Shown in pieces: positions 13,643-36,597 of a stretch of 64,000 bases of DNA. Every line of letters starts with the position of its first letter. Positions within the stretch are counted from its first letter, which is position 1. The notes under the pieces are model-generated. The model was not told the origin of the DNA and ran no database searches. It saw only the letters and a list, made by a program, of their open reading frames with translations. The stretch is taken from positions 124,001 to 188,000 of the IMG/VR virus record IMGVR_UViG_3300033977_000108; one strand, written 5' to 3'. The translations under genes and the position numbers were made by a program.

Positions 13643-16027
13643 TCAATCCAGCTTCGTATCCAATTTATCTAGTATCCTGGAAAACTCCAGTCCTTTCATG
13701 AACTTATCTATGTCTTCCCAATCTGGCGTTCCATCTTTCTTGGCTGGGAGTTTGATTGTGAGGTTCGCCCGCTCATCGCGGAACTTCCTACCATAGTTGA
13801 ACCGGTAGGATTCATTGGTTATCAGCGTGGCTATAAAGAGCTTACAGGCAGGCGTGATCTTGTCTTCTAACCCTTTCTTGACAGTCAGGACACACGTATC
13901 GTTGGCAACATAGAAATCATCAGGCTGATAGAAAGCCACACCAGGCTGACCATTTGCCAGTACGGTGATCTTTCCACCATTATACTTAGTCTGTCCTTCA
14001 ATCTCTGGGAATAGACCTACAGACCCATTGTCTTTCGTAGTAGCTGCCAGCAACGGATACTTCTTCTCCCCTTCCAGTTTCTCGGCTTCGTATTGGGAAA
14101 TACCGACAGGCCATTCCATGTCGAATAAGTCTCGTAGTTTGAATGGTTTCCAGGTATCCTTCGACGGAAGCTTGGACTTGATAACCACCTGTTTCAACGA
14201 TAGCAGGTAAAGCTCCAGATCTTTGATTGCCTGGCCGAACAAACTCTCTCCTAATTTGGAGTAGTCCGTCTCCAAGTAAGCCTCAGCGCACCACTCATCA
14301 TCGGCTTTTACTACTTTCTTCACTGATTGTCCCGGTACTGTATCTCGCTTCCTATAAGCCGAGATCCATTCTTTCTTTCTTTGTTCCCAGGCGTCGTCGT
14401 GTTTCTCTACGCGCTTCCCCTTGAGCAACCTGAAGTTGTCGTCCTTCCATAGACCAAACCACGTCTCGCGGTCTTCCTGGTGTGGCTGATGGCACTTTAT
14501 AACAAATACACAAGTGACAGCGCCGATGCTTGGGAATAGCTGATTCGGCATGGACATGACAGCTTCCAATGTGTGCTTCTCCATCAGTTCTTTCTTCTTG
14601 GCTGATTTCTGGATCATGCAAGACATTGGAACGATCGCTATTAGCGTCGCGCCTGGTTCGGCTAGCTCGGCAGCTTTCAGCACGAAGTCAAGCTCTGTCT
14701 TGTCTTTTTCCTTCTGTGAGTACGGCGGGTTCAATAAGATCACGTTTATCTTCATCGCTCTTAGCCTTTTCTTTATGTCCTCTGGCAGATCAAGCGTGTC
14801 TTCATTGAACAGATTACTCTTCCCGTCGCCGCGGAAGATCATGTTGGCAGCTGCTAATACGTACATCAGCGTCTCAAGCTCCACACCGGCGAGGCCTTGC
14901 TTCTTGATCCGTTCCTTTATCTTTGGATCGTCGGTCTTGCCCAGCATGTAAGCCATGGCAGCCAGGAGGAAGCCGGCTGATCCGCAGCACGGATCGTAGA
15001 CTACCGATGAGTTGGGATTGAGATTGGCAAGATCGCAGAATAACTCAGTTATGTGCTGTGGTGTCAATACTATGCCAAGCCCTGAACCGTCACCGCCTGA
15101 GTACCGAATGAATTCGCTATAAAGATCACCGAGTACATCCACACCAGCGTCGGACGTCAAAGCAAGCGACATGATGTCGTCAATCATCTGTATGGCTTCC
15201 AGCAGATTGTTGCTAACTGCTGTCTCATCTAGGACTGTTTCTATTTGTCCCAGCATCTTACGCTGCTTTTCATCTGGGATACCAGCCTTGTCCAAGATGT
15301 TCTCAATAGCCTGCTTGCAATTCCTGACCAATTCTTTCTTGCTGGCTACAGTATAACCTTTGGCGAACGCCTTATCCTTGAGGGCAAGCAGGATAGCGGC
15401 TACCAGCTCAGGCTTGAGCGTCTCTTTCAAGCTCATCTTATCACGCAGGAAGTTGTGGAGCTTCTTAGCTAGCTTCTGTATCTCCTCTTTAGTTGGCAGT
15501 CTTGAAGCTTTTACTTCCTGTAGCAACTGCTCGCAATCTGCTATCGACAACAGCTTGTCTACCTTGAGCCGTTCTACCTTCCCATTGCGCCGGGCTCTGA
15601 ACCAGCTTATCCTATGATTGTCCTTTGGCCCGGAAACGGCGAGGCCTAACGTATTCCTCTTCTGCCTGGCGCCTTTCATGTAGCTGATAACCCCATCCTC
15701 AGCATAAGCTGTCTTCTTCAGGTTATCGTTCTCAGTTAGGGTCTCCTTGCTCGTGTGGTGTTCTTTATCTGCCTTACACTCAACAAGGAGTACATCGCCA
15801 CCATTGAAGGGATACACAAGCTCAGGCCTGCCTATGCCCCCTTTACCTGTCTTCGATTTGATAGCATCACGCAGAATCGGATCGTCTGTTCCCTGCACTC
15901 CTGCCCCTATCTTCTCGGAATCGAAACCATGCTCCTTGAGCCAGGTAAGCAGCCACTCTTCAACTGCCCGTTCATTCTTCCGTCTGTAGATTGTCTTGCG
16001 GTTGGGTTTGTAATTGGGATCTACCAT
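13643..16027 (-). CDS. Type IIG-like restriction-modification fusion (PD-(D/E)XK + gamma-class N6-adenine MTase + TRD)
   Basis: GRPE...LLVECK; TP.HI..LF; YDPCCGSAGF; NPPYS; HsdS-like C-terminus. Confidence 0.88.
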   Translation of the reverse strand: MVDPNYKPNRKTIYRRKNERAVEEWLLTWLKEHGFDSEKIGAGVQGTDDPILRDAIKSKTGKGGIGRPELVYPFNGGDVLLVECKADKEHHTSKETLTENDNLKKTAYAEDGVISYMKGARQKRNTLGLAVSGPKDNHRISWFRARRNGKVERLKVDKLLSIADCEQLLQEVKASRLPTKEEIQKLAKKLHNFLRDKMSLKETLKPELVAAILLALKDKAFAKGYTVASKKELVRNCKQAIENILDKAGIPDEKQRKMLGQIETVLDETAVSNNLLEAIQMIDDIMSLALTSDAGVDVLGDLYSEFIRYSGGDGSGLGIVLTPQHITELFCDLANLNPNSSVVYDPCCGSAGFLLAAMAYMLGKTDDPKIKERIKKQGLAGVELETLMYVLAAANMIFRGDGKSNLFNEDTLDLPEDIKKRLRAMKINVILLNPPYSQKEKDKTELDFVLKAAELAEPGATLIAIVPMSCMIQKSAKKKELMEKHTLEAVMSMPNQLFPSIGAVTCVFVIKCHQPHQEDRETWFGLWKDDNFRLLKGKRVEKHDDAWEQRKKEWISAYRKRDTVPGQSVKKVVKADDEWCAEAYLETDYSKLGESLFGQAIKDLELYLLSLKQVVIKSKLPSKDTWKPFKLRDLFDMEWPVGISQYEAEKLEGEKKYPLLAATTKDNGSVGLFPEIEGQTKYNGGKITVLANGQPGVAFYQPDDFYVANDTCVLTVKKGLEDKITPACKLFIATLITNESYRFNYGRKFRDERANLTIKLPAKKDGTPDWEDIDKFMKGLEFSRILDKLDTKLD

Positions 16028-26686: not shown

Positions 26687-27034
26687 TTACCAGAACGACT
26701 TCGTTTCGCCGGATAAGTAATGGATGTAGCCTTGAGGACCATTAACGAAGCGGGGGCCCCTTTTATCTAATAGCTGCCCTGGTTGTACTTCCCTACTATA
26801 CACTTCTGGGGTCTTAGTCCCATCCTCATCGCGCTGTGGGTGCCATCTGTCGCCGCAGCAGGGGCAGTCTATGCCGCTCTTGCAGCCATAAAAGTATAAT
26901 CCCAGATCCTCTGCCCGGCAGTTTGCATCGTAGCTATTTATTGCTTCTATTACGACAAAACATGAGATACCCTTGGCAGAGTCTGTATCGAATTTGCCAA
27001 AGCCGTTATTCTGATCGAAACAAAAGAAAGGCAT
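26687..27034 (-). CDS. Conserved phage hypothetical protein
   Basis: F.QNN..G.F...IEA...DCPCCGDRW motif. Confidence 0.7.
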   Translation of the reverse strand: MPFFCFDQNNGFGKFDTDSAKGISCFVVIEAINSYDANCRAEDLGLYFYGCKSGIDCPCCGDRWHPQRDEDGTKTPEVYSREVQPGQLLDKRGPRFVNGPQGYIHYLSGETKSFW

Positions 27035-27035
27035 A

Positions 27036-27434
27036 CTAAATCTCCCTACCAATATCCTCACCGGCCTCAACTGCCTTGCCGGAATTTGTAGCCGTAAGGC
27101 CAGTAGATTGAAATGTATCCAGGACTTTCTCAGACAATAGACATCTCAATGGTAAAACTTGTACTCGTTGTGTGCTGAAATAGGCGCGCTCTGGGGTACC
27201 GAGCATGTCCCTGCCCATGCCCACTGGCGTTTCTTTGCCAAACAAGCTTGTCGTTATAATGAGCAAGGCAGGATATTCCTCATCCACTGAGAGGGGAACG
27301 TTGGTATTGAACGGTGTCTTATAACCCCGGAGTACGAAAGTAGTCTCGGATTCTGCTGCTACGGCCTGCCTTATTTCTTTGGTCTGTTCCGCATTCTTTG
27401 CTACTCTAACACTGACATAAACATCAAGGAGCAT
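27036..27434 (-). CDS. Hypothetical protein
   Basis: Coupled to the AAA ATPase stop. Confidence 0.55.
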   Translation of the reverse strand: MLLDVYVSVRVAKNAEQTKEIRQAVAAESETTFVLRGYKTPFNTNVPLSVDEEYPALLIITTSLFGKETPVGMGRDMLGTPERAYFSTQRVQVLPLRCLLSEKVLDTFQSTGLTATNSGKAVEAGEDIGREI

Positions 27435-29515
27435 TAGACCTCCCTATCTGTTTCCAAGATGCCCTGGCTATACATCTCTTGCCGGTGTTTCCGCAGCCCG
27501 TTCCTATCTCTACCGCGCTCACGCCACTCCTTTGGACAATACCCGAAGTGCGTGACATATTCCAGTGCCAGGTCTATCAGAGCTTCTATCAGCTGCGTAT
27601 TCGGCAGGATATTATCCATTGATAGTTCCCAATCAGCGCGTGTGATTTCTGCCGAATCGGCTGCCTTTCTTTGCTCTGTCTTGGATAACTTCTTTATCTC
27701 CGGGTCTTCCAAGATGCGAAAGATAGCGTTGTTTAGGGCGTCTTTTGCTACTACTTCTATGTCGGCGCCGGTCCAAACATGGTCGGCCCAGATTAGGCGG
27801 CCTAAACCATGCTCTTTATTCTCCAACTTTGCCGTCTCTTTCAGATCCTTCGCCCAACGGAGATGATGCTTCTTGGCGATAGCTTGAAGCAGTTCGGCTC
27901 TGCCTTCACTATTTACCTCGGAAGGGGGCAGAGCTGGCAAAACAGCATCGAAGCGACCAGACCGGATTAGAGCGGTGTCCAATACATCTGGTCTGTTTGT
28001 GGCACCGATAATCACAATCTTACCTGCCCGGCTGTCATCGGACAAAAAGGTCATTAGTGAGTTGAATACCCGGGAAGAAGTCCCAGAGTCTCCTATTGAG
28101 GTTCGTCCGGCGGAGAGAACAGAATCTAATTCATCAAGGAACAGAATGACAGGAGCGGCAGATTCCACAGCCTCCAAGAACTTGCGCGTCTTTGTCTCCG
28201 TTTCTCCCACAATGCCGCCGAAGAGCCTGTCAAGGTGGCCTATCATGAAATTCATTCTGGCTTCTTTGGCTAAGGCATTTGCTAAGAAGGTCTTACCGGT
28301 TCCTGGCGGACCGGTCAGGAGCACACCTTTGCTGCATGACCGCTTGTCGCCCACCATCAAGGGACGGATAATCATCCGCCTGAAGTATAACTTCAACTCT
28401 TCGTGGCCGCCTACCAGGTCGAAGCCATGCTCCGGTTCATAAAACTCAACCAGACCTTGATATTCCTCTTCAATAGCCCGCTGCTTTCGGGCGCGGATGG
28501 CCGTGAAATCGACGGGCACATTATCCAGCCAGGACTGCATCAGAACATCCTCTAAATGGCATCTTGACATGCCTGCGGATTGGACGGCGAACAGATGCTC
28601 ATCTACGCCTTCGGCATAGGCCACATCATGGACGTTCCTGCTGGCTATTCTTACAGGATGGCCTTCTTTAGAGTATCTTCGGACCATCTCGGTGAAGTTG
28701 TGCAGCCATTCTTCACGCTCCTCCAGCTTTGGGTGCTTCACAAGGATGCTGCTTACTCTTGAAGAGCCTCCACTGATGCTGTCATGAATATCCGTGGAGT
28801 GGCGGCTGAGAATGATTATCATGTTCTTATTGCCAATGGCTTCATCTGCCGCCCAGTTGCGCAGGTGTACTATAGGCAGCCTATCGGTTAGGTTCAGTTG
28901 GGACATCTGCCCGTTAGGGAAGATGGCATCCCCATCTTTGAATATAATCCTAAAGCATGTCTCAGGTTTCCCGACTTCCCCCTTCTTCCTTGCGGCCTGG
29001 TTCTTCTCGTATAGAGCTTTAGACGCGGCGAACCACATACTCAGCGTCTTCAAACAAGCCATCAAATCGGGCGGGTGGATAATCAGATTCCACGGTACCA
29101 TGCTGTCGTCGCTATCCTTTGCCTCATCGGGATAGCAGGCAGCCATGATAGTCTCCCAGTCTTTACGGGATTTCTCATGGACAAAAGTCAGCCCCTCATT
29201 CAGGCTATAGCAGGCCATTACACGATTGTCGGCTTGCAGGATTTCTTTCTTTTGAGCGGCTGTAGTGGCTTTCATTAGTCTATAATTTACATCCAGTTTG
29301 GTAGCGAGAAGGTCTATAATATGAGATCTACAGCCGCTATTGTCCTGGTAGTCGTTGATGTTCCCGTGGAGAATAAAGGTATGGGCTATCTTCGCTTTAT
29401 AGTCGCGGGCTAATTTACGGATGGCTTCCGGCTCAGGAAACTCATAAGCCTTTGTCTCTTCCACCGCGTCCTCTGATTCGGGCTTTTTGGTCTTATTTTC
29501 TTCGTCCGGCATCAT
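27434..29515 (-). CDS. AAA+ ATPase (classical clade, degenerate N-terminal AAA-like domain)
   Basis: GVLLTGPPGTGKT, LFLDELD, GATNRPDVLD.ALIRSGRFD; N-terminal FILHGN. Confidence 0.92.
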   Translation of the reverse strand: MMPDEENKTKKPESEDAVEETKAYEFPEPEAIRKLARDYKAKIAHTFILHGNINDYQDNSGCRSHIIDLLATKLDVNYRLMKATTAAQKKEILQADNRVMACYSLNEGLTFVHEKSRKDWETIMAACYPDEAKDSDDSMVPWNLIIHPPDLMACLKTLSMWFAASKALYEKNQAARKKGEVGKPETCFRIIFKDGDAIFPNGQMSQLNLTDRLPIVHLRNWAADEAIGNKNMIIILSRHSTDIHDSISGGSSRVSSILVKHPKLEEREEWLHNFTEMVRRYSKEGHPVRIASRNVHDVAYAEGVDEHLFAVQSAGMSRCHLEDVLMQSWLDNVPVDFTAIRARKQRAIEEEYQGLVEFYEPEHGFDLVGGHEELKLYFRRMIIRPLMVGDKRSCSKGVLLTGPPGTGKTFLANALAKEARMNFMIGHLDRLFGGIVGETETKTRKFLEAVESAAPVILFLDELDSVLSAGRTSIGDSGTSSRVFNSLMTFLSDDSRAGKIVIIGATNRPDVLDTALIRSGRFDAVLPALPPSEVNSEGRAELLQAIAKKHHLRWAKDLKETAKLENKEHGLGRLIWADHVWTGADIEVVAKDALNNAIFRILEDPEIKKLSKTEQRKAADSAEITRADWELSMDNILPNTQLIEALIDLALEYVTHFGYCPKEWRERGRDRNGLRKHRQEMYSQGILETDREV

Positions 29516-29768
29516 GCTCCTTTAGTTCCAGATTTAGCCCTAGGAAGTCGGCTGGACCATTGGTGACTGGAGTGTTCCTAGGAAACATCTCCATGCCGAA
29601 ATAAAAGGCCAGGTATTGCTTCAAGGCTTCGTCAAGCGTGAGAACTCCCGACAATACACGATTGACGAAGGGTACCCAGTTTGGGTCTTCTTCCACCCTC
29701 TCCATGTCTATTTCCACTTTGCCGGTGAGGGTGAAGATTACGGTCTTTATGTCCTCATCGTTCCTCAT
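29493..29768 (-). CDS. Hypothetical protein
   Basis: Coupled ORF within the module. Confidence 0.55.
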   Translation of the reverse strand: MRNDEDIKTVIFTLTGKVEIDMERVEEDPNWVPFVNRVLSGVLTLDEALKQYLAFYFGMEMFPRNTPVTNGPADFLGLNLELKEHDAGRRK

Positions 29769-30434
29769 CTACACCTCCCTTACCAAATCAAAGTTCGGTG
29801 CTGGGAAGCCGGTAACCTGAACCAATCCGGTTTCATCTATGGTTATTTCTGTTTGCTGCTGGGTAAAATCAGCAAGCGTGTATCTATTACTAAATAAGCG
29901 GAACTCCTGGTTCGTTGAAGAACTTAGTGGTCGGTTATCTGGCCGCCCCCTCATATAGCGCCCCATTATAGCGAAGTCTAAGTAGTAAGTACTCAAGAGG
30001 TTCCAGGTGGCTACTTTGCTGGTATACGGTTTGTTAGCCGACGTCTCAATAACCGCTTTGCCCTCCTCCGTAATACATAGTGTCTGGTATTGGCCGGCTT
30101 CCAATTCTTTGAGGGAATAACCAGTGAACATTCCAATGCTGAAGTTTGGTATTGCCTCCCTCACTTGCTGGGAAACGGCCAATACATTCTGTGCTTGATG
30201 CATGGGCTCGCCGCCGGACCAGGTAAGACCTTCCAAATTATTGGCTCGCGCTTCAGTCTCTATCCATTTGGCAAGATATTCATTATCCTCCCAGCATGGA
30301 TGGCCTGGGTTTGGATTGTGCGTTTCCGTATTGAAGCAGCCGGGGCAATTCAATAGACAGCCTTGGACCCAGATTATAGCCCGCTTGCCTGGTCCATTGA
30401 CGCGCGTTTCTGATAGCCTTGCGTGTATTAGCAT
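29769..30434 (-). CDS. Radical SAM / 4Fe-4S protein of the NrdG-PflA activase type
   Basis: VNGPGKR.IIWVQGCLLNCPGCFN (CxxxCxxC); SGGEP; SS.NQ. Confidence 0.88.
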   Translation of the reverse strand: MLIHARLSETRVNGPGKRAIIWVQGCLLNCPGCFNTETHNPNPGHPCWEDNEYLAKWIETEARANNLEGLTWSGGEPMHQAQNVLAVSQQVREAIPNFSIGMFTGYSLKELEAGQYQTLCITEEGKAVIETSANKPYTSKVATWNLLSTYYLDFAIMGRYMRGRPDNRPLSSSTNQEFRLFSNRYTLADFTQQQTEITIDETGLVQVTGFPAPNFDLVREV

Positions 30435-30856
30435 TGATGCTCCTTGTTGTCGGCGCCGGAGATAATAAGCTTCGTCATCGCGCTGATTTGGTTCTGTAAG
30501 TCGCGATTGTCCTCGTAGACTTTGTAAGTAGTCTCATCAACTACGAGCATCTTTACCCTACATTTCGGGCAAATAATCCCTATGATGTCGATAAAGATAT
30601 CACCGGCTATCTCTTCTTTCTCCACCTTGCCGTCTATAATAAGCGATTGGAAGCCCCTGCGATAACTGCCTTCCAGCGAGTAAGTCAGCCCCTGACAGGA
30701 GGGACATTTTATAGGGTCAGTCTGAACCTTGCTATCAGGTATCATAACTATGGCAGTTGGTATCCAACTGGGCTCCTGCTCGGGGGGCTTTGGCGTTTCG
30801 GGCTTCGCGTCCGAGACTTGTTCTACCGGATTGTCTTCTGGTTTATCTTCCGCCAA
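30428..30856 (-). CDS. Zinc-ribbon protein
   Basis: CPSC...CPKC. Confidence 0.6.
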   Translation of the reverse strand: MAEDKPEDNPVEQVSDAKPETPKPPEQEPSWIPTAIVMIPDSKVQTDPIKCPSCQGLTYSLEGSYRRGFQSLIIDGKVEKEEIAGDIFIDIIGIICPKCRVKMLVVDETTYKVYEDNRDLQNQISAMTKLIISGADNKEHQC

Positions 30857-31031
30857 GAGTCACCTTCTGGGTCTGCTGCGTTTCATAGAATTCTGGCTTG
30901 GTTTTCTCTTCCAGTGTGCGGCCGAGCTTGGCAAATATCTTCGCCAAGTCCTTACAGCCTGGACCGTGCCCGCCTTGGATATCAACCTCAGCGTCGCCGT
31001 TTTCACCAATGGTTACAACGATTTGTGGCAT
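30843..31031 (-). CDS. DUF2997 family protein
   Basis: I.VTI..NG...V..QG..G..C......LG......KPEFYE. Confidence 0.8.
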   Translation of the reverse strand: MPQIVVTIGENGDAEVDIQGGHGPGCKDLAKIFAKLGRTLEEKTKPEFYETQQTQKVTLGGR

Positions 31032-31309
31032 TGTTCCTCCTTCCAATCAGTATAGAATCTTCCTATGCGGATGAATAGGATACCAGTCTTTGATCCCGTC
31101 CATTTACGCACGGCCTTTGCTACACCACGAAGAGTGAGTTTGTCCAGCATGATAGCTTTCTCCAGAGATTCTATATGCTGTAGTGTAGCCTGCTGATGCG
31201 ATGCGTGCTCCAAATACCCCGCGGTATGCGGTCCATACCTCTGCATCTCTATGTCATCTTCGTGTACGATCTGCTCCCACTTGGCGATAAGGGCTTCTAC
31301 GTAGCTCAT
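31013..31309 (-). CDS. Hypothetical protein
   Basis: Coupled ORF. Confidence 0.55.
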   Translation of the reverse strand: MSYVEALIAKWEQIVHEDDIEMQRYGPHTAGYLEHASHQQATLQHIESLEKAIMLDKLTLRGVAKAVRKWTGSKTGILFIRIGRFYTDWKEEQCHKSL

Positions 31310-31488
31310 TTACCGCTCCCTTCCTGTTTGGTACAAGCACTTTCCTTCTTGATGGTCTTGTCGAGATTCTTCAGGGCTTTTCTTAACTGCCTGTTGCCTC
31401 CAAGTTCCCTTATGGCCTTCTTCAGGCCCTTACGCGCCTTCCGCAAGACCCTAAGCATCCTTTGGTTAGGCATTAGCATATCCTTCAA
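31306..31488 (-). CDS. Basic hypothetical protein
   Basis: Lys/Arg-rich helix. Confidence 0.45.
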   Translation of the reverse strand: MKDMLMPNQRMLRVLRKARKGLKKAIRELGGNRQLRKALKNLDKTIKKESACTKQEGSGK

Positions 31489-31717
31489 TCGGGAACTCGG
31501 GTGGATTAGGCCGTGGGGCTACCTGGCCTATGTGATAATCGGCGTAGGCCTGCAGTGCATCCAGACGCATCTGCTCTTCTGCACTTATCGTCCCTGAAAT
31601 GCTTTTGTCGATTAGGACGCCACGTTCATGATTTGTCAGCGCCCAATTCTCCTCAAAGTGAAGGAAGTCAGCCAAGTTCATCACGCCCTCAAGTTCCCTC
31701 GGCAATTGTCTAGGCAT
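31466..31717 (-). CDS. Hypothetical protein
   Basis: Coupled ORF. Confidence 0.5.
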   Translation of the reverse strand: MPRQLPRELEGVMNLADFLHFEENWALTNHERGVLIDKSISGTISAEEQMRLDALQAYADYHIGQVAPRPNPPEFPIEGYANA

Positions 31718-32123
31718 TGTACACCAATTGGATTTTCACACCCTTGTCGGTTTTTATTTCCCGTTTGCTTGCCAGCGTCAATCCGCGCGCTCGGGCGAGC
31801 TTGGCTGCTTTCCTGGCGGCATACTTCTGCTTGAGCTTCCCTACCCATTTGCTATTGAAGCGCCCGCGGTCATACTCTGAGATGATGGCTACATACTTGC
31901 CATTCTCTTTCTTGAAGCCAAGGTCATTGGAAGACGAGCCGACATACTTACGGGGAACTATGATATCGGCTTTCTGTTCCCGCTTGTCTCCGTGGTAGCC
32001 TTCCAGCTGCTGAGCCTCCTTATTCACCTGTATTGCCTGGGACGAAAAGCCCATATCTTGCAGGGCACCGACTAGGCAGGCTTCATCAGTCATTTCTAAT
32101 TCATAGTTATGGTAAGCCGACAT
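31710..32123 (-). CDS. DUF1257 (Ycf35-like) family protein, copy 1
   Basis: MS.Y......D...L..AL.DMG...L.GY.G...ADI...NDLGF....Y..I..EYD...LKQKYA. Confidence 0.8.
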   Translation of the reverse strand: MSAYHNYELEMTDEACLVGALQDMGFSSQAIQVNKEAQQLEGYHGDKREQKADIIVPRKYVGSSSNDLGFKKENGKYVAIISEYDRGRFNSKWVGKLKQKYAARKAAKLARARGLTLASKREIKTDKGVKIQLVYNA

Positions 32124-32194
32124 TGCTAACCTCCTGTAAATTGTCTCCTATCCAGGTTATCTGCCCTCTTTGGTCAGCTTCTTTAGGAATAAAG

Positions 32195-32464
32195 TCAGGT
32201 TCTGTTCTTCTCGCTTTGCTTTTTCCGGCATTTTTGCCCTCGCGTCCGGGGAGTTATCAGTTCGACGTTCAAATCCTTGGCTACACAATGAGAATCGCCC
32301 CTAACCACATCTTGTATGATTCTTAACCTTTCGTTGTCATAGGTTTCAAGCGCATCCATCAAGGCGTACTGGATGATATTTTGAAGCTCATGAATCTTTT
32401 CAGCAATGTTCAGCAAATTATTATAGGCTGTATATCTACCTAACGGTAGCCTAATCTTTTTCAT
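32195..32464 (-). CDS. Hypothetical protein
   Basis: ORF between the two DUF1257 genes. Confidence 0.5.
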   Translation of the reverse strand: MKKIRLPLGRYTAYNNLLNIAEKIHELQNIIQYALMDALETYDNERLRIIQDVVRGDSHCVAKDLNVELITPRTRGQKCRKKQSEKNRT

Positions 32465-32847
32465 ACATTATACACCAATTGGATTTTTCTGCCTACCGTC
32501 CTCTGGGCTTGTAGGGTCAGCCCTTTCTGGCGCGCAAGTTTCATAGCCTTGCGCTTCTGATAGTGCTGTTTGACGCGATTGATAAAGTCTTTATTGAGGG
32601 CACTATCCATAGATTCTTTCACTAATCCCAGCTCGCCCTTCGAGTTCTTGACGAAGCCGGCTTCATACCGGTTCCCTACCCCAGAATTCGCGGGCAGTTT
32701 GATCTTCACTTCCCGCTTGTTCTGCCATGGGCTTTTGATGGTCAGATTTTCTCCTATCTCTACTTTGCATCCTATGTCTTCCAGCGCCTTGGCAAGTAGC
32801 TCTTCGTCTTCTACGCCCGCGCATTCTTGTTTTGAATAGTGACTCAT
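32461..32847 (-). CDS. DUF1257 family protein, copy 2
   Basis: MSHYS...DEELL.KALEDIG...GF.....KQHY....A.KLAR.KGLTL...IQLVYN, paralogous to copy 1. Confidence 0.75.
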   Translation of the reverse strand: MSHYSKQECAGVEDEELLAKALEDIGCKVEIGENLTIKSPWQNKREVKIKLPANSGVGNRYEAGFVKNSKGELGLVKESMDSALNKDFINRVKQHYQKRKAMKLARQKGLTLQAQRTVGRKIQLVYNV

Positions 32848-32854
32848 TGTCCTC

Positions 32855-33550
32855 CTAAAATGCCACCGTGGGTTCGGTATGGTCTGCCTTGTAAAACGAC
32901 TTTAGCAGGCTGGATATCCTCCTGCTATAGACGCCGCGCTCTACAAGTATTACATCCGGTACTCTGCCGGCGAAGTCTTTCAGTTTGACGTAGCTCTCTC
33001 GCGAATGTCCCTTGTCTTTCAGTGCGGCCAGGATTTCAGGTATGTTCTTCTGCGAGAGATCAAACCAGTTTGGATTCGTACCGGAATCTATTAGTATCTG
33101 CTGTAAAGCGATGTCGTATCTAAAGGAAAAGTAGGCGGTATAATGACAGAATGAACACCATGTCGGTTCATACGGGTGCCTATCAAAGTGCTCCTTCAGT
33201 CTAATCAGCTCGGCGGAGATGAGGCTCCCTCGCTGTATGGTATTGATGTCATATTTGCTTTTGAATCTGGAGTTTACGCCGGTTCGTATTACTTTCCTTT
33301 GACCGTGTGTGTCCATTATTGTGGTGTTCAATTCTTCATAGTCCTTTGGGTCAATGGCGGTATCCGTAAGGAATGCTGCCTGTATGAGGTTCTGGCATTC
33401 CGTACAAAAGTGGCCGTAGATTAGCTGCCTCGTAAGGGTCGGAGCGTGGCCCACTTTCTTGTATTCCTTGTCCTCCTTTGTTATGTCGCCCGTGGCCCAA
33501 GGGCTGAACCGAATGCTTGGCACATCGCCATCATAGAATAATTCTATCAT
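32855..33550 (-). CDS. Hypothetical Zn-binding protein
   Basis: HFCTEC...WCSFC. Confidence 0.6.
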   Translation of the reverse strand: MIELFYDGDVPSIRFSPWATGDITKEDKEYKKVGHAPTLTRQLIYGHFCTECQNLIQAAFLTDTAIDPKDYEELNTTIMDTHGQRKVIRTGVNSRFKSKYDINTIQRGSLISAELIRLKEHFDRHPYEPTWCSFCHYTAYFSFRYDIALQQILIDSGTNPNWFDLSQKNIPEILAALKDKGHSRESYVKLKDFAGRVPDVILVERGVYSRRISSLLKSFYKADHTEPTVAF

Positions 33551-36500
33551 AAGACCCTCTCATTCAGCAGCTCTTCGGTACCAAAGTCCAGGTTCTGCGT
33601 TATCTCCAGGTCTTCTCCAGCCTCTCTGAAGAAATCCAGGATGTGGGACCTGTCATCCAGCACGCGATTTACAAACCAGCGTATGTCCAGCGCGCTCGCC
33701 CTGACATTGATTACCTTGCGGTCCAATGCCTGCTCGGCAGCCGCCACTTTGGCATAAAAGGTATTGTAAACATGGTCATCAACTGTATTCTCCATCACAA
33801 GCAAATAGACATCACAGAACCTCTCCTCCTTCGTCGGTGTCATTACTCGGCTCCACGCCTGCGCCTGTAGCCCAGGCTGCCATAGCAAGTCGGTACAAAT
33901 CACTGATTTGGCAGCAGATAAGTCAACACCCTCTCTTATTTCCATCGTACCGGCTATCCAAAGATGTCTCTCTGGGTCGTCGCGGAAAGTGTCAAACGCT
34001 TCCCTGCGCTCTTCATCATTCCAGCTACCATCAAAGACGATGGGATTATAGCTAGCGAACTCTTTGGCAAGGGACTCCCTCATGGCTATAAAGCCGGATA
34101 GGATAACTATTTTCTCCCCTGCCATGGTTCTTTCCAGTACTATTCTCTTTATGTCGTCCATTTTGCCGCCGCCAGGCGGGCCGTGGTAAATAGGAGCCCT
34201 TGGCGGTTTCATCTTGGCCAGTACTTTATTGAAGTGTTCTGGGCAGGTAGCCGCGATGCGCATCTTGCTCATCTGCGAAATGACCATGGCGGGATTCACC
34301 AGATGGTGCTGTTGGGCGGCCTGCTGGGACAGCGTATTGAATTCTGTCTCAAACTGATTGATAGAAGATACAACCAGAGCCGCTTGTAAGGGATGCATCT
34401 TGGAGGCTACCCGATGCATTCTCGGCTTTGGTATGTGCAAGCCCAGCCTCTCCAGTGAGGACAGTACCAGCGGGTCTTCGTAACTTCTGCGCACCATCTT
34501 GGGTGCCATCAATTCCCAGAACTTGATCGGATTCTTCAGATATGGCAGCATCTTGCGGCTGTCTTTCAGCCCGCCGCGCTTATAGACCACATACTCGCAG
34601 AATTCATTATAGAAATCCGTGGCGCCGGCCGTTCCTTGATAGGGGAATGAAGCGGAGCCACCCTTGAAAATCCAGTGTAGCGGCCAATAGGCATCCGAGG
34701 GCGTATTCGGCATCAAAGTGCCCGTCATGCCCAGATGATGCTTGCCTCGGAATGTGCGTATTGCCTTCCCTACATCGCTTCCCTCCGATTTTATGGTATG
34801 AACTTCATCTACGATGACGGTGGGAAACCTATCCTTTATTCTGCGATAGACTGGGGGCACCCAGACACTATCTACCAATCCACACTCGCGGCACATGCGG
34901 CCTTTTATTGCTCTCGGATCGCAGTTCCTATGGACTTTTAGATTCAAGTCGCTCCATACATTCAGCTGCTTTGTCGTAGTCGTTTGCTTCAACTCAAAGC
35001 CTTTGGATTCAATGATTTTCTTGGATCGCCAGGCTGCTCCTCTCATTCGCCGGTTATCATATCTGCGAACACAGGCGGGATTTACGCACATGTACCCAAA
35101 GTTCCCGGCTTCTTCATGCCCCTTTACCGGCGCCTTATGAAACTCCAGCGGCATCTTCATCAGCAGATTCTTCTGCCCGGTGAGGGGGTCTTCGGAGATT
35201 AGTTTTGGCACATAAGGCCAAACCAAGGTGGAGCCGCAGTGCGGGCACTTGTGCTCATTTAGCACATCAGTCTTACCTTCCGTAAATCTAAAGCGTAGAT
35301 AACCTCTGCGTGCCTTCCTGTCCTTCTTTCCGGCGTCGTCCACGCCTCGGCCGGCTTGCCGCGGGCCGCCCTTGATCCAGGAGTAAGTCATCAAGTAAAT
35401 CTTCCCTGGCTTCTTCAAGTCTGCCAGACTATCTACTATGACATACTGTCCGAAGTATGGCAACACCTTGCTCAAGGCGTCCAAGTCCTTCTTCGTGAAG
35501 ATTCTGGCATTCCTTGGGCCTATCCAGGCGCACTTGTCCGAGCCCCACAACCAGGTCAGCACAGCAGATTCTCTGGTCTTCCCTTGTCTCATTGGCTTTA
35601 GGTCGGCCGCATTATCCTTAGTGGCCATCTGCGGGACATCAACATGGGAGTGGTCAAACAGGGCATCACCAAATACCTCCAGCTTTTCAGTGTAGTAGTT
35701 TATTAGTTCCGGGTATTTTGCAGGCACGCACTTCTTCGGGTCGTAGATTACCCTTTCGTCATAGGCGAAGTAGGTCTCCAGCGGAGTAGCGTTTTCATGG
35801 AAAGTCGTCCATTCAAATACGCTGGGTCCGCTGATAACCAGCTTTATGTTGGGGCGGATTGGCTCACGGAAAATCTTCACAATGCCATCCTGTCCGCTGC
35901 GTGAAGTATCTACTACTTGGTATCTCTCGCCCTTCTGAAAGATAAGCTCTTTGGCGGCTTGCTTGTGCTGTCCGGCATGCCCTTGATAGCCACTGTGTCC
36001 CGTGGGACCTTCCGGGGGTACATAGGTCGGTTCGGCTACAAAGTCGGCTTTGCAAGTAAGCACCATCCCGGCTTCCACTTTGTCGAATAGAGGCCTTGTA
36101 TCTTTGTATTCTGGCAAGAGGTAAGGCGTATTTTCTCTTTCCAGTCGCCTCTTCTCTTTCTTTAGCCAGTTGCCCAGGGTCGTGGATAGATTTACTTCTA
36201 AGCCATAGCTTTCCAATAACCTGGCTATTGGATGCTTGTTTAGTTCGGCATCTATTAGCATCCAAGCTCGGCTCTGTAAGGTCAGTTTTCTATGGCTAAT
36301 GTCAGATAAGATTTGCAGTTCAAGCTCGTCGTCTGGTTTATCAGGATCCGGGCGCTCTATTAGCAGCGCATGCAGTTCTTGGAGCAGCAAAGCCGACATT
36401 ACATCATTGGGAGAGATAACTATACGGCTGCCGCCTTTGTGTAGCGTCACGGAAGGCTTCTCTACCAATGCTAACGGCTGTATGATCTTCTGTTTCTTGG

Positions 36501-36597
36501 CCTTACTATGTATCACTGGGTCCTGCTTCTTGGCTGCTTGTTCTCCTGGGAACAAATCAGCCATCAGGGATAGCTGTCCTTTTATCTCCTTCTTCAT
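33547..36597 (-). CDS. Large SNF2-family SF2 helicase with Zn-finger insertion
   Basis: MRQGKT, IVDEVH, GMTGTLMPN, EGVDL, QAWSRV; inserted CPHC, CVNPAC, CREC. Confidence 0.8.
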   Translation of the reverse strand: MKKEIKGQLSLMADLFPGEQAAKKQDPVIHSKAKKQKIIQPLALVEKPSVTLHKGGSRIVISPNDVMSALLLQELHALLIERPDPDKPDDELELQILSDISHRKLTLQSRAWMLIDAELNKHPIARLLESYGLEVNLSTTLGNWLKKEKRRLERENTPYLLPEYKDTRPLFDKVEAGMVLTCKADFVAEPTYVPPEGPTGHSGYQGHAGQHKQAAKELIFQKGERYQVVDTSRSGQDGIVKIFREPIRPNIKLVISGPSVFEWTTFHENATPLETYFAYDERVIYDPKKCVPAKYPELINYYTEKLEVFGDALFDHSHVDVPQMATKDNAADLKPMRQGKTRESAVLTWLWGSDKCAWIGPRNARIFTKKDLDALSKVLPYFGQYVIVDSLADLKKPGKIYLMTYSWIKGGPRQAGRGVDDAGKKDRKARRGYLRFRFTEGKTDVLNEHKCPHCGSTLVWPYVPKLISEDPLTGQKNLLMKMPLEFHKAPVKGHEEAGNFGYMCVNPACVRRYDNRRMRGAAWRSKKIIESKGFELKQTTTTKQLNVWSDLNLKVHRNCDPRAIKGRMCRECGLVDSVWVPPVYRRIKDRFPTVIVDEVHTIKSEGSDVGKAIRTFRGKHHLGMTGTLMPNTPSDAYWPLHWIFKGGSASFPYQGTAGATDFYNEFCEYVVYKRGGLKDSRKMLPYLKNPIKFWELMAPKMVRRSYEDPLVLSSLERLGLHIPKPRMHRVASKMHPLQAALVVSSINQFETEFNTLSQQAAQQHHLVNPAMVISQMSKMRIAATCPEHFNKVLAKMKPPRAPIYHGPPGGGKMDDIKRIVLERTMAGEKIVILSGFIAMRESLAKEFASYNPIVFDGSWNDEERREAFDTFRDDPERHLWIAGTMEIREGVDLSAAKSVICTDLLWQPGLQAQAWSRVMTPTKEERFCDVYLLVMENTVDDHVYNTFYAKVAAAEQALDRKVINVRASALDIRWFVNRVLDDRSHILDFFREAGEDLEITQNLDFGTEELLNERVL

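Follow-up and report, generated by a model that had tools for sequence, protein, structure and literature searches.

A phage gene module of a AAA+ ATPase, Ycf35-like proteins, DUF2997 and an NrdG-like radical SAM enzyme that lacks an NrdD partner in its own genome

The complete 204.6-kb genome of a jumbo phage from peat (IMG/VR record IMGVR_UViG_3300033977_000108) encodes, within 27434-32847 of the 64,000-nucleotide stretch analyzed here (the window; positions 124,001 to 188,000 of the record), a compact block of genes on the minus strand that includes a large AAA+ ATPase, an activase-type radical SAM protein, a four-Cys zinc ribbon, a DUF2997 protein and two diverged DUF1257 (Ycf35-like) paralogues (Table 1). 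Adjacent genes overlap by 1-23 nt or are separated by 0-7 nt, with the exception of one 71-nt gap. The block lies in the replication and recombination region of the phage, which also includes a RecA gene; the ribonucleotide reductase (RNR) in the window is class II. The observation on which this work builds, a preliminary description of these genes from sequence alone, is confirmed: all named genes exist at the stated coordinates, the degenerate first domain of the ATPase is supported, the class II assignment of the RNR holds, and so does the absence of a glycyl-radical enzyme, which we extend from the window to the whole genome. In the table and below, loci carrying homologues of the module are numbered with the prefix L; L001 and L002 are cut-outs of this same genome and do not represent independent relatives.

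Table 1. Genes of the module and its neighborhood, in window coordinates.
Position	Strand	Product	Observations
27434-29515	-	Two-tier AAA+ ATPase, 693 aa: degenerate N-terminal AAA-like domain plus p97-D2-like domain predicted to be active	PF00004, E 4e-33, residues 398-525; best solved relatives VAT/p97 D2 domains, E 1e-62; Walker A, Walker B, sensor 1 and arginine-finger region present; found in 56 of 63 module loci
29493-29768	-	91-aa protein between the radical SAM and AAA genes	No family match; homologues at the same position in 10 loci of window-like phages
29769-30434	-	NrdG/PFL-AE-like radical SAM enzyme, 221 aa, non-RNR branch	Fer4_12, 96.7 bits; NrdG TIGR02491, 84.7 bits, below the cut-off of 126.1
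30428-30856	-	Four-Cys zinc-ribbon protein, 142 aa (TTG start)	Two CxxC pairs in the sequence; Pfam zinc-ribbon matches sub-threshold only; homologues between DUF2997 and the radical SAM gene in 11 loci
30843-31031	-	DUF2997 protein, 62 aa counted from the ATG	PF11211, 27.6 bits (cut-off 24.1); family alignment has an invariant Cys and near-invariant Gly residues
31013-31309	-	98-aa protein	No family match; iterated profile found it in only 3 entries, two of them L001 and L002; membership of the module doubtful
31466-31717	-	83-aa protein	No family match; found in 4 entries (the window, L001, L002 and L009); in L009 about 4.2 kb from the radical SAM gene, beyond the AAA gene
31710-32123	-	DUF1257 (Ycf35-like) paralogue B, 137 aa	PF06868, 46.1 bits (cut-off 22.2); AF2 model pLDDT 93.6; matches AlphaFold DB Ycf35/DUF1257 clusters, E 7e-9; no significant PDB fold match
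32195-32464	-	89-aa protein between the two DUF1257 genes	No family match; found in only 3 entries, two of them own-genome cut-outs
32461-32847	-	DUF1257 (Ycf35-like) paralogue A, 128 aa	PF06868, 33.6 bits (cut-off 22.2); 50% identical to its orthologue in L009
32855-33550	-	231-aa protein, syntenic with the module in window-like phages	No family match; homologues in 11 loci, always between the SNF2-like helicase and DUF1257; protein atlas gave no lead
33547-36597	-	SNF2-like helicase, 1016 aa; syntenic neighbor that may or may not belong to the module	Helicase_C, 33.6 bits; SNF2-rel_dom sub-threshold; directly upstream in the window and L007, L009, L011, L015, L017, L019, L021 and L045
45874-48450		Class II RNR	TIGR02504, 584 bits (cut-off 400)

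The ATPase is built in two tiers. A profile of its N-terminal 355 residues aligns with the family's own AAA domain (hhalign probability 88%, E 3e-6, 173 columns), but Walker A is replaced in this upper tier, while the catalytic motifs of the lower tier are intact. The two DUF1257 copies are only 33% identical to each other, whereas each is 50-54% identical to its orthologue in the window-like phage locus L009, showing that the duplication is older than this phage. The predicted DUF1257 fold gave no functional lead, with a best VIA-align Z of 6.2, below background.

The genes form a conserved module rather than a chance cluster. We identified 63 distinct loci that carry this radical SAM family next to DUF1257 or DUF2997, drawn from uncultivated phages, Acidobacteriota mobile elements, several other bacterial phyla, a Streptomyces isolate and a Methanoregula archaeon; Streptomyces gossypiisoli is among the carriers. 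DUF2997 is present in 55 of these loci, DUF1257 in 54 and the AAA gene in 56, and 43 hold all four core genes on one strand; across the set, the genes are almost always on the same strand. DUF2997 lies upstream of the radical SAM gene in 52 of the 63 loci, with a median gap of 12 nt. In six loci the radical SAM gene sits next to an AAA gene with no detectable DUF1257 or DUF2997. Bacterial versions of the module add an Hsp70-like ATPase and a WD40 protein, one phage group carries a RecA/KaiC-like gene inside the module, and sister branches of the radical SAM family sit beside TldD/PmbA peptidase genes. We found no description of this module in the searchable literature.

Several lines of evidence separate the radical SAM enzyme from the activases of anaerobic RNR. 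Beyond its sub-threshold NrdG score, it branches outside the NrdD-linked NrdG clade, which is well supported (SH-aLRT 96) and excludes 60 of 63 module sequences. The preliminary description had named an nrdD elsewhere in the genome, together with loss of linkage in other genomes, as grounds for rejecting its reading; neither was found, as the complete genome encodes no NrdD and no glycyl-radical domain, and the genes stay linked elsewhere. NrdD is likewise found in 0 of 25 related phage records with the module, in 0 of 5 cyanobacterial genomes and in 0 of 4 other bacterial genomes with the family, yet is present in 18 of 23 phages with ordinary, short NrdG. Activase-type chemistry nonetheless remains plausible: the NGPGxR, CX3CX2C and SGGEP motifs are invariant in a full-length family alignment, and the best solved relative is the PFL-activating enzyme (E 1e-17, against E 0.004 for QueE).

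DUF2997 and DUF1257 are the ancient core pair of the module, with the AAA+ gene as a usual companion and the radical SAM gene as an optional add-on. The pair is adjacent in 5 of 5 cyanobacterial genomes, is fused in the 62-kb phage of locus L029, and occurs with an AAA gene but no radical SAM gene in the cultured phages RHph_I4 and SM1. Across 151 Anaerolineae-class genomes, 3 of the 4 with the long radical SAM type also have DUF2997, which occurs in 10 of the 151 overall. This layered history, the synteny of the upstream 231-aa gene and its helicase neighbor, and the Hsp70-like and WD40 additions in bacteria were all missed in the preliminary description.

Based on these observations, we tentatively favor a model in which the block is a self-contained, horizontally mobile protein-remodeling module. 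Its hub would be a classical-clade AAA+ ATPase with an inactive upper tier and an active p97-D2-like lower tier, which we infer forms a hexamer. DUF2997 and DUF1257 would be its constant companions and probably form one complex, which in this phage lineage would contain two different DUF1257 subunits. In this phage and many relatives the module has gained a dedicated NrdG/PFL-AE-like enzyme that, we propose, binds SAM on its CX3CX2C [4Fe-4S] cluster, makes a 5'-deoxyadenosyl radical, and abstracts a hydrogen from a protein of the module rather than from an RNR. In this view the likeliest acceptor is the Gly-x-x-Gly-x-x-Cys loop of DUF2997, whose gene is translationally coupled to that of the enzyme, and the AAA+ motor would then load, unfold or recycle this complex or its client, in the phage during the replication and recombination stage. 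The chaperone-type and peptidase neighbors of related loci fit a protein-directed theme. Our data establish the identities of the genes, their linkage, the absence of an RNR partner and the separate phylogeny of the radical SAM enzyme; complex formation, a protein substrate, the acceptor site and the biological role are inferences.

This model has clear weaknesses. No biochemical or structural evidence links the radical SAM enzyme to any protein substrate, and a prediction of the complex gave no answer. The DUF2997 motif is just as conserved in cultured phages and cyanobacteria where no radical SAM gene exists, and its Cys therefore has a role independent of the enzyme. The six loci with a radical SAM gene and an AAA gene but no detectable DUF1257 or DUF2997, and the lack of a functional lead from the DUF1257 fold, also count against it. 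Known glycyl-radical motifs and domains are absent, and many carriers are aerobes, in which a stable glycyl radical would not survive. The earlier interpretation, an ATP-driven remodeling machine with DUF1257/DUF2997 adaptors and a radical modification step, carried and duplicated by a phage possibly for host takeover or anti-defense, is partly supported: the conserved module, the co-occurrence of DUF1257, DUF2997 and the AAA ATPase in phages and bacteria, the unpartnered activase-like enzyme and the duplication all hold, while the adaptor role, the modification of a residue, and a role in takeover or anti-defense are not shown.

Among the alternatives, one possible but doubtful reading is that DUF2997-DUF1257 is not the substrate but a redox or iron-sulfur partner, acting as an electron donor, cluster guard or cluster-repair factor for a [4Fe-4S] protein, and that the enzyme's true target is another phage or host protein handled by the AAA+ motor, for example a RecA/KaiC-like ATPase or a replication factor. 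The cyanobacterial DUF2997-ycf35 pair is reported to be clustered with the [4Fe-4S] ferredoxin gene fed7 (PMC4284462), although no CxxCxxCxxxC motif lies within 1.5 kb in the 5 genomes we checked. Conservation of the DUF2997 motif with or without the radical SAM gene is consistent with this idea, as are the position of its invariant Cys at a helix N-cap in a low-confidence model, the RecA/KaiC-like gene inside some phage modules, the location of the window module in the replication block with its RecA gene, and the reported interaction of cyanobacterial Ycf46 with KaiC (PMC13683863). However, one Cys per 60-aa protein is a poor cluster site, and no cofactor motif was recognized.

An equally doubtful proposal, concerning biological role, is that the module is a counter-defense or establishment device of mobile elements, with chromosomal versions serving as conflict or stress systems, rather than a replication accessory. 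The module is carried by phages and by an integrated element next to a PRTRC cassette, DUF3150, a toxin-antitoxin pair and a DUF6094 gene; it is patchy within the Anaerolineae class, in 4 to 10 of 151 genomes; and its bacterial Hsp70-like and WD40 partners resemble the chaperone-based conflict systems described in PMC7159879, although that paper does not describe this module. Against this, PADLOC returned no match beyond the generic AAA domain, no nuclease, toxin or pore effector domain is seen, and the module is conserved in ordinary cyanobacterial and plastid genomes as ycf35/ycf46.

Less likely still, the enzyme may act on a small molecule as QueE does, yielding a nucleotide, cofactor or signal that the AAA+/DUF1257/DUF2997 proteins use or sense. 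The Fer4_12 family also contains QueE, there is a weak match to the QueE-like phrog_2076 (E 8.5e-7), the gene lies in a nucleotide and replication block, and no protein substrate was identified. Yet no NCBIfam QueE model matches, PFL-AE is by far the better match among solved structures, the genome has no QueC and no TGT/DpdA, and the recurring neighbors are chaperone-type ATPases, WD40 proteins and peptidases rather than metabolic enzymes. Finally, although NrdG is the nearest named family, automatic annotation calls the homologues NrdG, and a host NrdD cannot be excluded because the host genome is unknown, the idea that this is simply a phage NrdG for the host's anaerobic RNR, incidentally placed beside the other genes, is largely refuted by its score, its separate clade, its conserved linkage to DUF2997 and AAA across phyla, the lack of NrdD in 9 bacterial genomes with the family, the phage's own class II RNR, and the tendency of phages with true NrdG to carry NrdD themselves.

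The radical SAM enzyme shares with NrdG and the PFL-activating enzyme (Fer4_12/COG0602) its small size, N-terminal NGPGxR motif, CX3CX2C cluster motif and SGGEP SAM motif, but has a mid-sequence insertion and a conserved C-terminal extension (R-Y, E, TGFP), and no NrdD, PFL or Gly_radical partner occurs in any carrier genome tested. The concept of a small protein as the dedicated substrate of an activase-type radical SAM enzyme recalls GrcA/YfiD-type glycyl-radical proteins, a resemblance that is functional speculation only, since no Gly_radical domain or RVxG[FYW] motif is present and the DUF2997 and DUF1257 folds are unrelated to it. Like the two-tier unfoldases Cdc48/p97/VAT, the ATPase has a second AAA-like tier and an intact second region of homology in its p97/VAT D2-like domain; unlike them, its upper tier has lost its P-loop, it has no Cdc48-type N domain, its pore loop 1 has an aliphatic residue where most unfoldases have an aromatic one, and the phage encodes no peptidase partner.

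An AAA-DUF1257-DUF2997 trio also occurs in one block in Rhizobium phage RHph_I4 and Pseudomonas phage SM1, close to the replication genes of a large siphovirus-type genome, but with a single DUF1257 copy, no radical SAM gene anywhere in those genomes, and only about 30% AAA identity to the window protein over the ATPase domain. In cyanobacteria and red-lineage plastids, the counterparts are Ycf35 (DUF1257), DUF2997 and Ycf46, the last by name alone, as homologues of our AAA protein are labeled SpoVK/Ycf46/Vps4 family by JGI. In cyanobacteria the AAA gene and the radical SAM gene are unlinked to the DUF2997-DUF1257 pair, whereas here everything lies in one operon-like block on a phage, with DUF1257 duplicated and a zinc ribbon added.

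The window is bases 124001-188000 of a complete 204,633-bp virus record with direct terminal repeats. All genes of the region lie on the minus strand, and stops and starts overlap or abut at nearly every junction, so that the block reads as one operon-like unit. The surrounding genes form a replication and nucleotide block: a primase-helicase, an HsdM-like methyltransferase, RecA, a PolA-like polymerase, DnaN, RecD2 and a class II (B12-dependent) ribonucleotide reductase that passes the NrdJ cut-off. The region is found in a peat metagenome run, and the nearest bacterial relatives of the radical SAM and DUF proteins come from peat and soil Acidobacteriota MAGs, which suggests an acidobacterial host. 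Coordinates are collected in the table, where handles beginning with L denote loci retrieved in our survey of the radical SAM family.

Features of the module, its neighbors and loci from the survey; window genes from the helicase to the DUF7296 protein are in the direction of transcription
Source	Coordinates	Strand	Feature
Window	33547-36597	-	SNF2-like helicase
Window	32855-33550	-	231-aa protein (p231)
Window	32461-32847	-	DUF1257 copy A
Window	32195-32464	-	89-aa protein
Window	31710-32123	-	DUF1257 copy B
Window	31466-31717	-	83-aa protein
Window	31306-31488	-	60-aa Lys/Arg-rich ORF with a TTG start and no homolog found; doubtful, may not be a gene
Window	31013-31309	-	98-aa protein
Window	30843-31031	-	DUF2997 protein
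Window	30428-30856	-	Four-Cys zinc-ribbon protein
Window	29769-30434	-	221-aa radical SAM protein
Window	29493-29768	-	91-aa protein (p91)
Window	27434-29515	-	693-aa AAA+ ATPase
Window		-	132-aa protein
Window	26687-27070	-	DUF7296 protein (103.6 bits), two genes downstream of the AAA gene
Window	13643-16027	-	794-aa protein with an HsdM-like DNA methyltransferase domain, in the replication block
L007	6007-9118		Module of the closest relative of the window module
L006	5910-13426		Module and flanking genes in a Bryobacterales genome
L026	6233-7153		Example of the phage group with ParB-like and RecA/KaiC-like genes
L027	8728-9594		Example of the phage group with ParB-like and RecA/KaiC-like genes

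Pfam searches confirm AAA, Fer4_12/Radical_SAM, DUF2997 and both DUF1257 copies above their thresholds. The AAA+ ATPase matches PF00004 (E 4e-33), and its ATPase domain is closest to the D2 domains of VAT and p97 (E about 1e-62). Walker A, Walker B, sensor 1 and the second region of homology with its arginine fingers, read directly in the family alignment, are all kept, placing the protein among the classical AAA+ ATPases (COG0464, SpoVK/Ycf46/Vps4 group), and its homologs are named SpoVK/Ycf46/Vps4 by JGI; a relation by orthology to cyanobacterial or plastid Ycf46, however, is supported only by this shared generic name and by the shared partners. A profile of the N-terminal 355 residues, built from 49 family members, aligns with the family's own AAA domain (hhalign probability 88%, E 3e-6, 173 columns), with non-P-loop residues at the P-loop position, and the preliminary description's claim of a degenerate first domain is therefore reasonable. 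The family is large and sits mostly on 200-230 kb contigs. Several homologs on other large contigs (P0126, P0170, P0174, P0176, P0179, P0190, P0215 and P0227) are interrupted by inteins with homing-endonuclease domains, suggesting that the gene is important to these phages.

The radical SAM protein scores 96.7 bits against Fer4_12 and carries the hallmarks of the glycyl-radical-enzyme activase superfamily: the N-terminal NGPGxR motif, the CX3CX2C cluster motif and the SGGEP SAM motif are invariant in a 36-sequence alignment. It belongs to a full-length family of about 200-aa proteins that are 40-47% identical to it, and its best solved relative is pyruvate formate-lyase activating enzyme (PFL-AE; E 1e-17), with QueE far weaker (E 0.004). 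The public gene call for this gene (P0001) is only 144 aa, starting at internal Met78 and so lacking the cluster motif, while the 221-aa ORF aligns from residue 1 with 35 homologs. Despite its hallmarks, the protein is not an RNR activase. It scores 84.7 bits against the NrdG model TIGR02491, below the curated cut-off of 126.1, and lower still against the other NrdG models. The NrdD family PF13597 is absent from the complete phage genome, from 25 of 25 IMG/VR records that carry the module (11 of them at least 95% complete) and from 9 of 9 bacterial genomes with the family, but is present in 18 of 23 records that carry the ordinary short NrdG type. In a quick tree of 149 sequences, the NrdD-linked sequences form their own clade (SH-aLRT 96), and 60 of 63 module-linked sequences fall in the other part of the tree; the window sequence lies in a 30-row clade (SH-aLRT 99) of which 27 rows are module-linked. 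A substrate of the usual activase kind is also missing, as the glycyl-radical domain PF01228 is absent from the genome even at E <= 1. Finally, no NCBIfam QueE model matches, only a weak QueE-like phrog match was found, and the genome has no QueC or TGT, so a deazaguanine pathway is excluded and the QueE reading is rejected.

The cluster is more than a chance association. We retrieved 80 viral and 80 genomic loci with the radical SAM profile and scanned their six-frame ORFs with iteratively built profiles; after removal of duplicates, 63 loci have DUF1257 or DUF2997 within 3 kb of the radical SAM gene. DUF2997 is present in 55 of these and lies upstream of the radical SAM gene in 52, with a median gap of 12 nt. 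DUF1257 is present in 54 and an AAA gene in 56, and all four genes are present in 43, almost always on one strand. Carriers include many uncultivated phages, Acidobacteriota, Chloroflexota, Planctomycetota, Verrucomicrobiota, Thermodesulfobacteriota, candidate-phyla bacteria, Streptomyces gossypiisoli TRM 44567 (L136, with DUF2997, radical SAM, AAA and DUF1257) and Methanoregula. Nine loci share the window's own order of SNF2, p231, DUF1257 (one or two copies), DUF2997, zinc ribbon, radical SAM, p91 and AAA. The closest relative of the window module, L007, has two tandem radical SAM paralogs (230 and 225 aa) and a NUMOD3 homing-endonuclease gene inserted between the p231 homolog and DUF1257. 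An apparent AAA-DUF1257 fusion in locus L092 is rejected as a probable frameshift, since its DUF1257 part lacks the nearly invariant Met-Ser start. Megablast of the region against GenBank phages, a scan of viral contigs with the single AAA protein, and tblastn of DUF1257 copy B and of the C-terminal half of the radical SAM protein against GenBank phages all found nothing, and no cultured phage with the four-gene set was found.

Within the module, DUF2997 followed directly by DUF1257 is the oldest unit. The pair is adjacent in 5 of 5 cyanobacterial genomes examined, and a review reports it as a cluster with ferredoxin fed7 (PMC4284462). It is fused into one 210-aa protein in a complete 62-kb phage, and the cultured phages RHph_I4 and SM1 have AAA, DUF1257 and DUF2997 together but no radical SAM gene anywhere. 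In 151 Anaerolineae-class genomes, DUF2997 occurs in 10 and the long radical SAM type in 4, three of which also have DUF2997, on the same contig. The radical SAM gene is therefore an accessory that joined an older DUF2997-DUF1257-AAA set. It also occurs directly beside an AAA gene without the two small proteins, and a relaxed HMM search of these loci for hidden DUF1257 or DUF2997 genes found none.

Other carriers extend the module in different ways. Bacterial operons add a divergent Hsp70-like ATPase and a WD40 protein, and acidobacterial versions add DUF3150 and lie next to a PRTRC ubiquitin-like cassette on an apparent integrated element. In the Bryobacterales locus L006, the module is followed by a DUF3150-like gene and a PRTRC cassette (PRTRC_E, Prok_Ub, Prok-E2_D, ThiF) and preceded by a PIN/PhdYeFM pair, Sipho_Gp157 and DUF6094, and looks like part of an integrated mobile element. 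In one phage group (the L023-L043 group of loci), a ParB-like gene precedes the AAA gene and a RecA/KaiC-like gene sits between AAA and DUF2997; cyanobacterial Ycf46 is reported to interact with KaiC. A sister clade of the radical SAM family in Myxococcota and Pseudomonadota (L106, L122, L124, L131, L134, L135 and L138) is always preceded by a long TldD/PmbA-like peptidase gene, and in two of these genomes the radical SAM ORF extends about 510 aa upstream.

Both DUF1257 copies pass the PF06868 gathering score (46.1 bits for copy B and 33.6 bits for copy A, against 22.2), and copy B gives a confident AF2 model (pLDDT 93.6). The model matches AlphaFold DB Ycf35/DUF1257 clusters (E 7e-9 to 1e-7), but Foldseek and VIA-align searches found no meaningful solved relative (best E 0.05 and best Z 6.2, below background). 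The N-terminal Met-Ser of DUF1257, a Gly-Phe pair, one Tyr and one Gly are invariant or nearly invariant; the Met-Ser is nearly invariant across 38 sequences that are otherwise about 20-50% identical, hinting at a functional mature N-terminus. DUF2997 scores 27.6 bits against the PF11211 cut-off of 24.1 and has the conserved G-x-x-G-x-x-C motif, with an invariant Cys and near-invariant Gly residues. Its AF2 model is of low confidence (pLDDT 60.6) and shows a hairpin followed by a helix whose N-cap carries the invariant Cys; poor folding alone would fit an obligate complex subunit. Two alignment rows from GenBank phage loci were left out of structure prediction, an alignment for modeling the natural DUF1257-DUF2997 fusion was badly stretched by global alignment and was set aside, and a three-chain prediction of the radical SAM protein with DUF1257 and DUF2997 gave no answer and is not used as evidence. 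Protein-atlas searches with the 231-aa protein and the zinc ribbon gave no leads.

The linkage pattern puts the AAA+ motor at the hub of the module, with DUF2997-DUF1257 as its usual companions and the radical SAM enzyme as a dedicated extra. Three observations make a protein substrate more likely than a small molecule: all characterized close relatives of the enzyme abstract a hydrogen from a protein glycine, every recurrent neighbor is a chaperone-type ATPase, a scaffold or a peptidase, and no metabolic partner is present. The tight coupling to DUF2997 makes this protein our first candidate for the acceptor. While the linkage, the missing NrdD partner and the separate tree placement are results of the analysis, SAM cleavage, hydrogen abstraction from a protein glycine and the identity of the acceptor are inferred. 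Against these inferences, the DUF2997 motif is equally conserved where no radical SAM gene exists, and many carriers are aerobes; an iron-sulfur or redox partner role for the DUF2997-DUF1257 pair is a serious rival. In the phage, the module may act as a replication accessory, an establishment function or a counter-defense device. In searches against PADLOC 2.0 models of known anti-phage defense systems, only the AAA domain matched, to the IetA and TRIP13 models, and the other nine proteins had no match.

A bolder reading, which we consider unlikely on present evidence, is that the DUF2997-DUF1257 (Ycf35) complex is a new kind of radical-bearing or radical-modified small protein with its own NrdG-like activase and its own AAA+ handler. 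It would represent a branch of activase biology with no glycyl-radical enzyme, spreading on phages and mobile elements, and its stripped-down form would be the long-unexplained ycf35/ycf46 genes of cyanobacteria and plastids. Knowledge of the enzyme's substrate would define a new radical SAM reaction context and give the first functional handle on Ycf35, DUF2997 and Ycf46-like ATPases, which have been open reading frames of unknown function in cyanobacterial and plastid genomes for decades. The family is also routinely mis-annotated as NrdG, which can lead to false inference of anaerobic nucleotide metabolism in phage and metagenome studies.

In the searchable literature, including work on DUF1257, DUF2997, Ycf46 and phages, DUF3150/PRTRC and conflict systems, we found no description of the module or of this radical SAM branch, and NCBIfam has no model for the branch. 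For cyanobacterial Ycf46, the literature we found reports only a KaiC-interacting, stress-induced AAA ATPase (PMC13683863). Activase-type radical SAM enzymes are known only as partners of glycyl-radical enzymes, QueE aside. Here, a whole sister family shows conserved linkage to an AAA+ ATPase and two domains of unknown function across phages, integrated elements, at least eight bacterial phyla and archaea, and has no reductase or lyase partner in the carrier genomes tested. While the parts belong to known superfamilies, and two of them to named but uncharacterized families (Ycf35 and DUF2997), what is new is an activase-type radical SAM enzyme with a non-canonical, still unidentified partner set.
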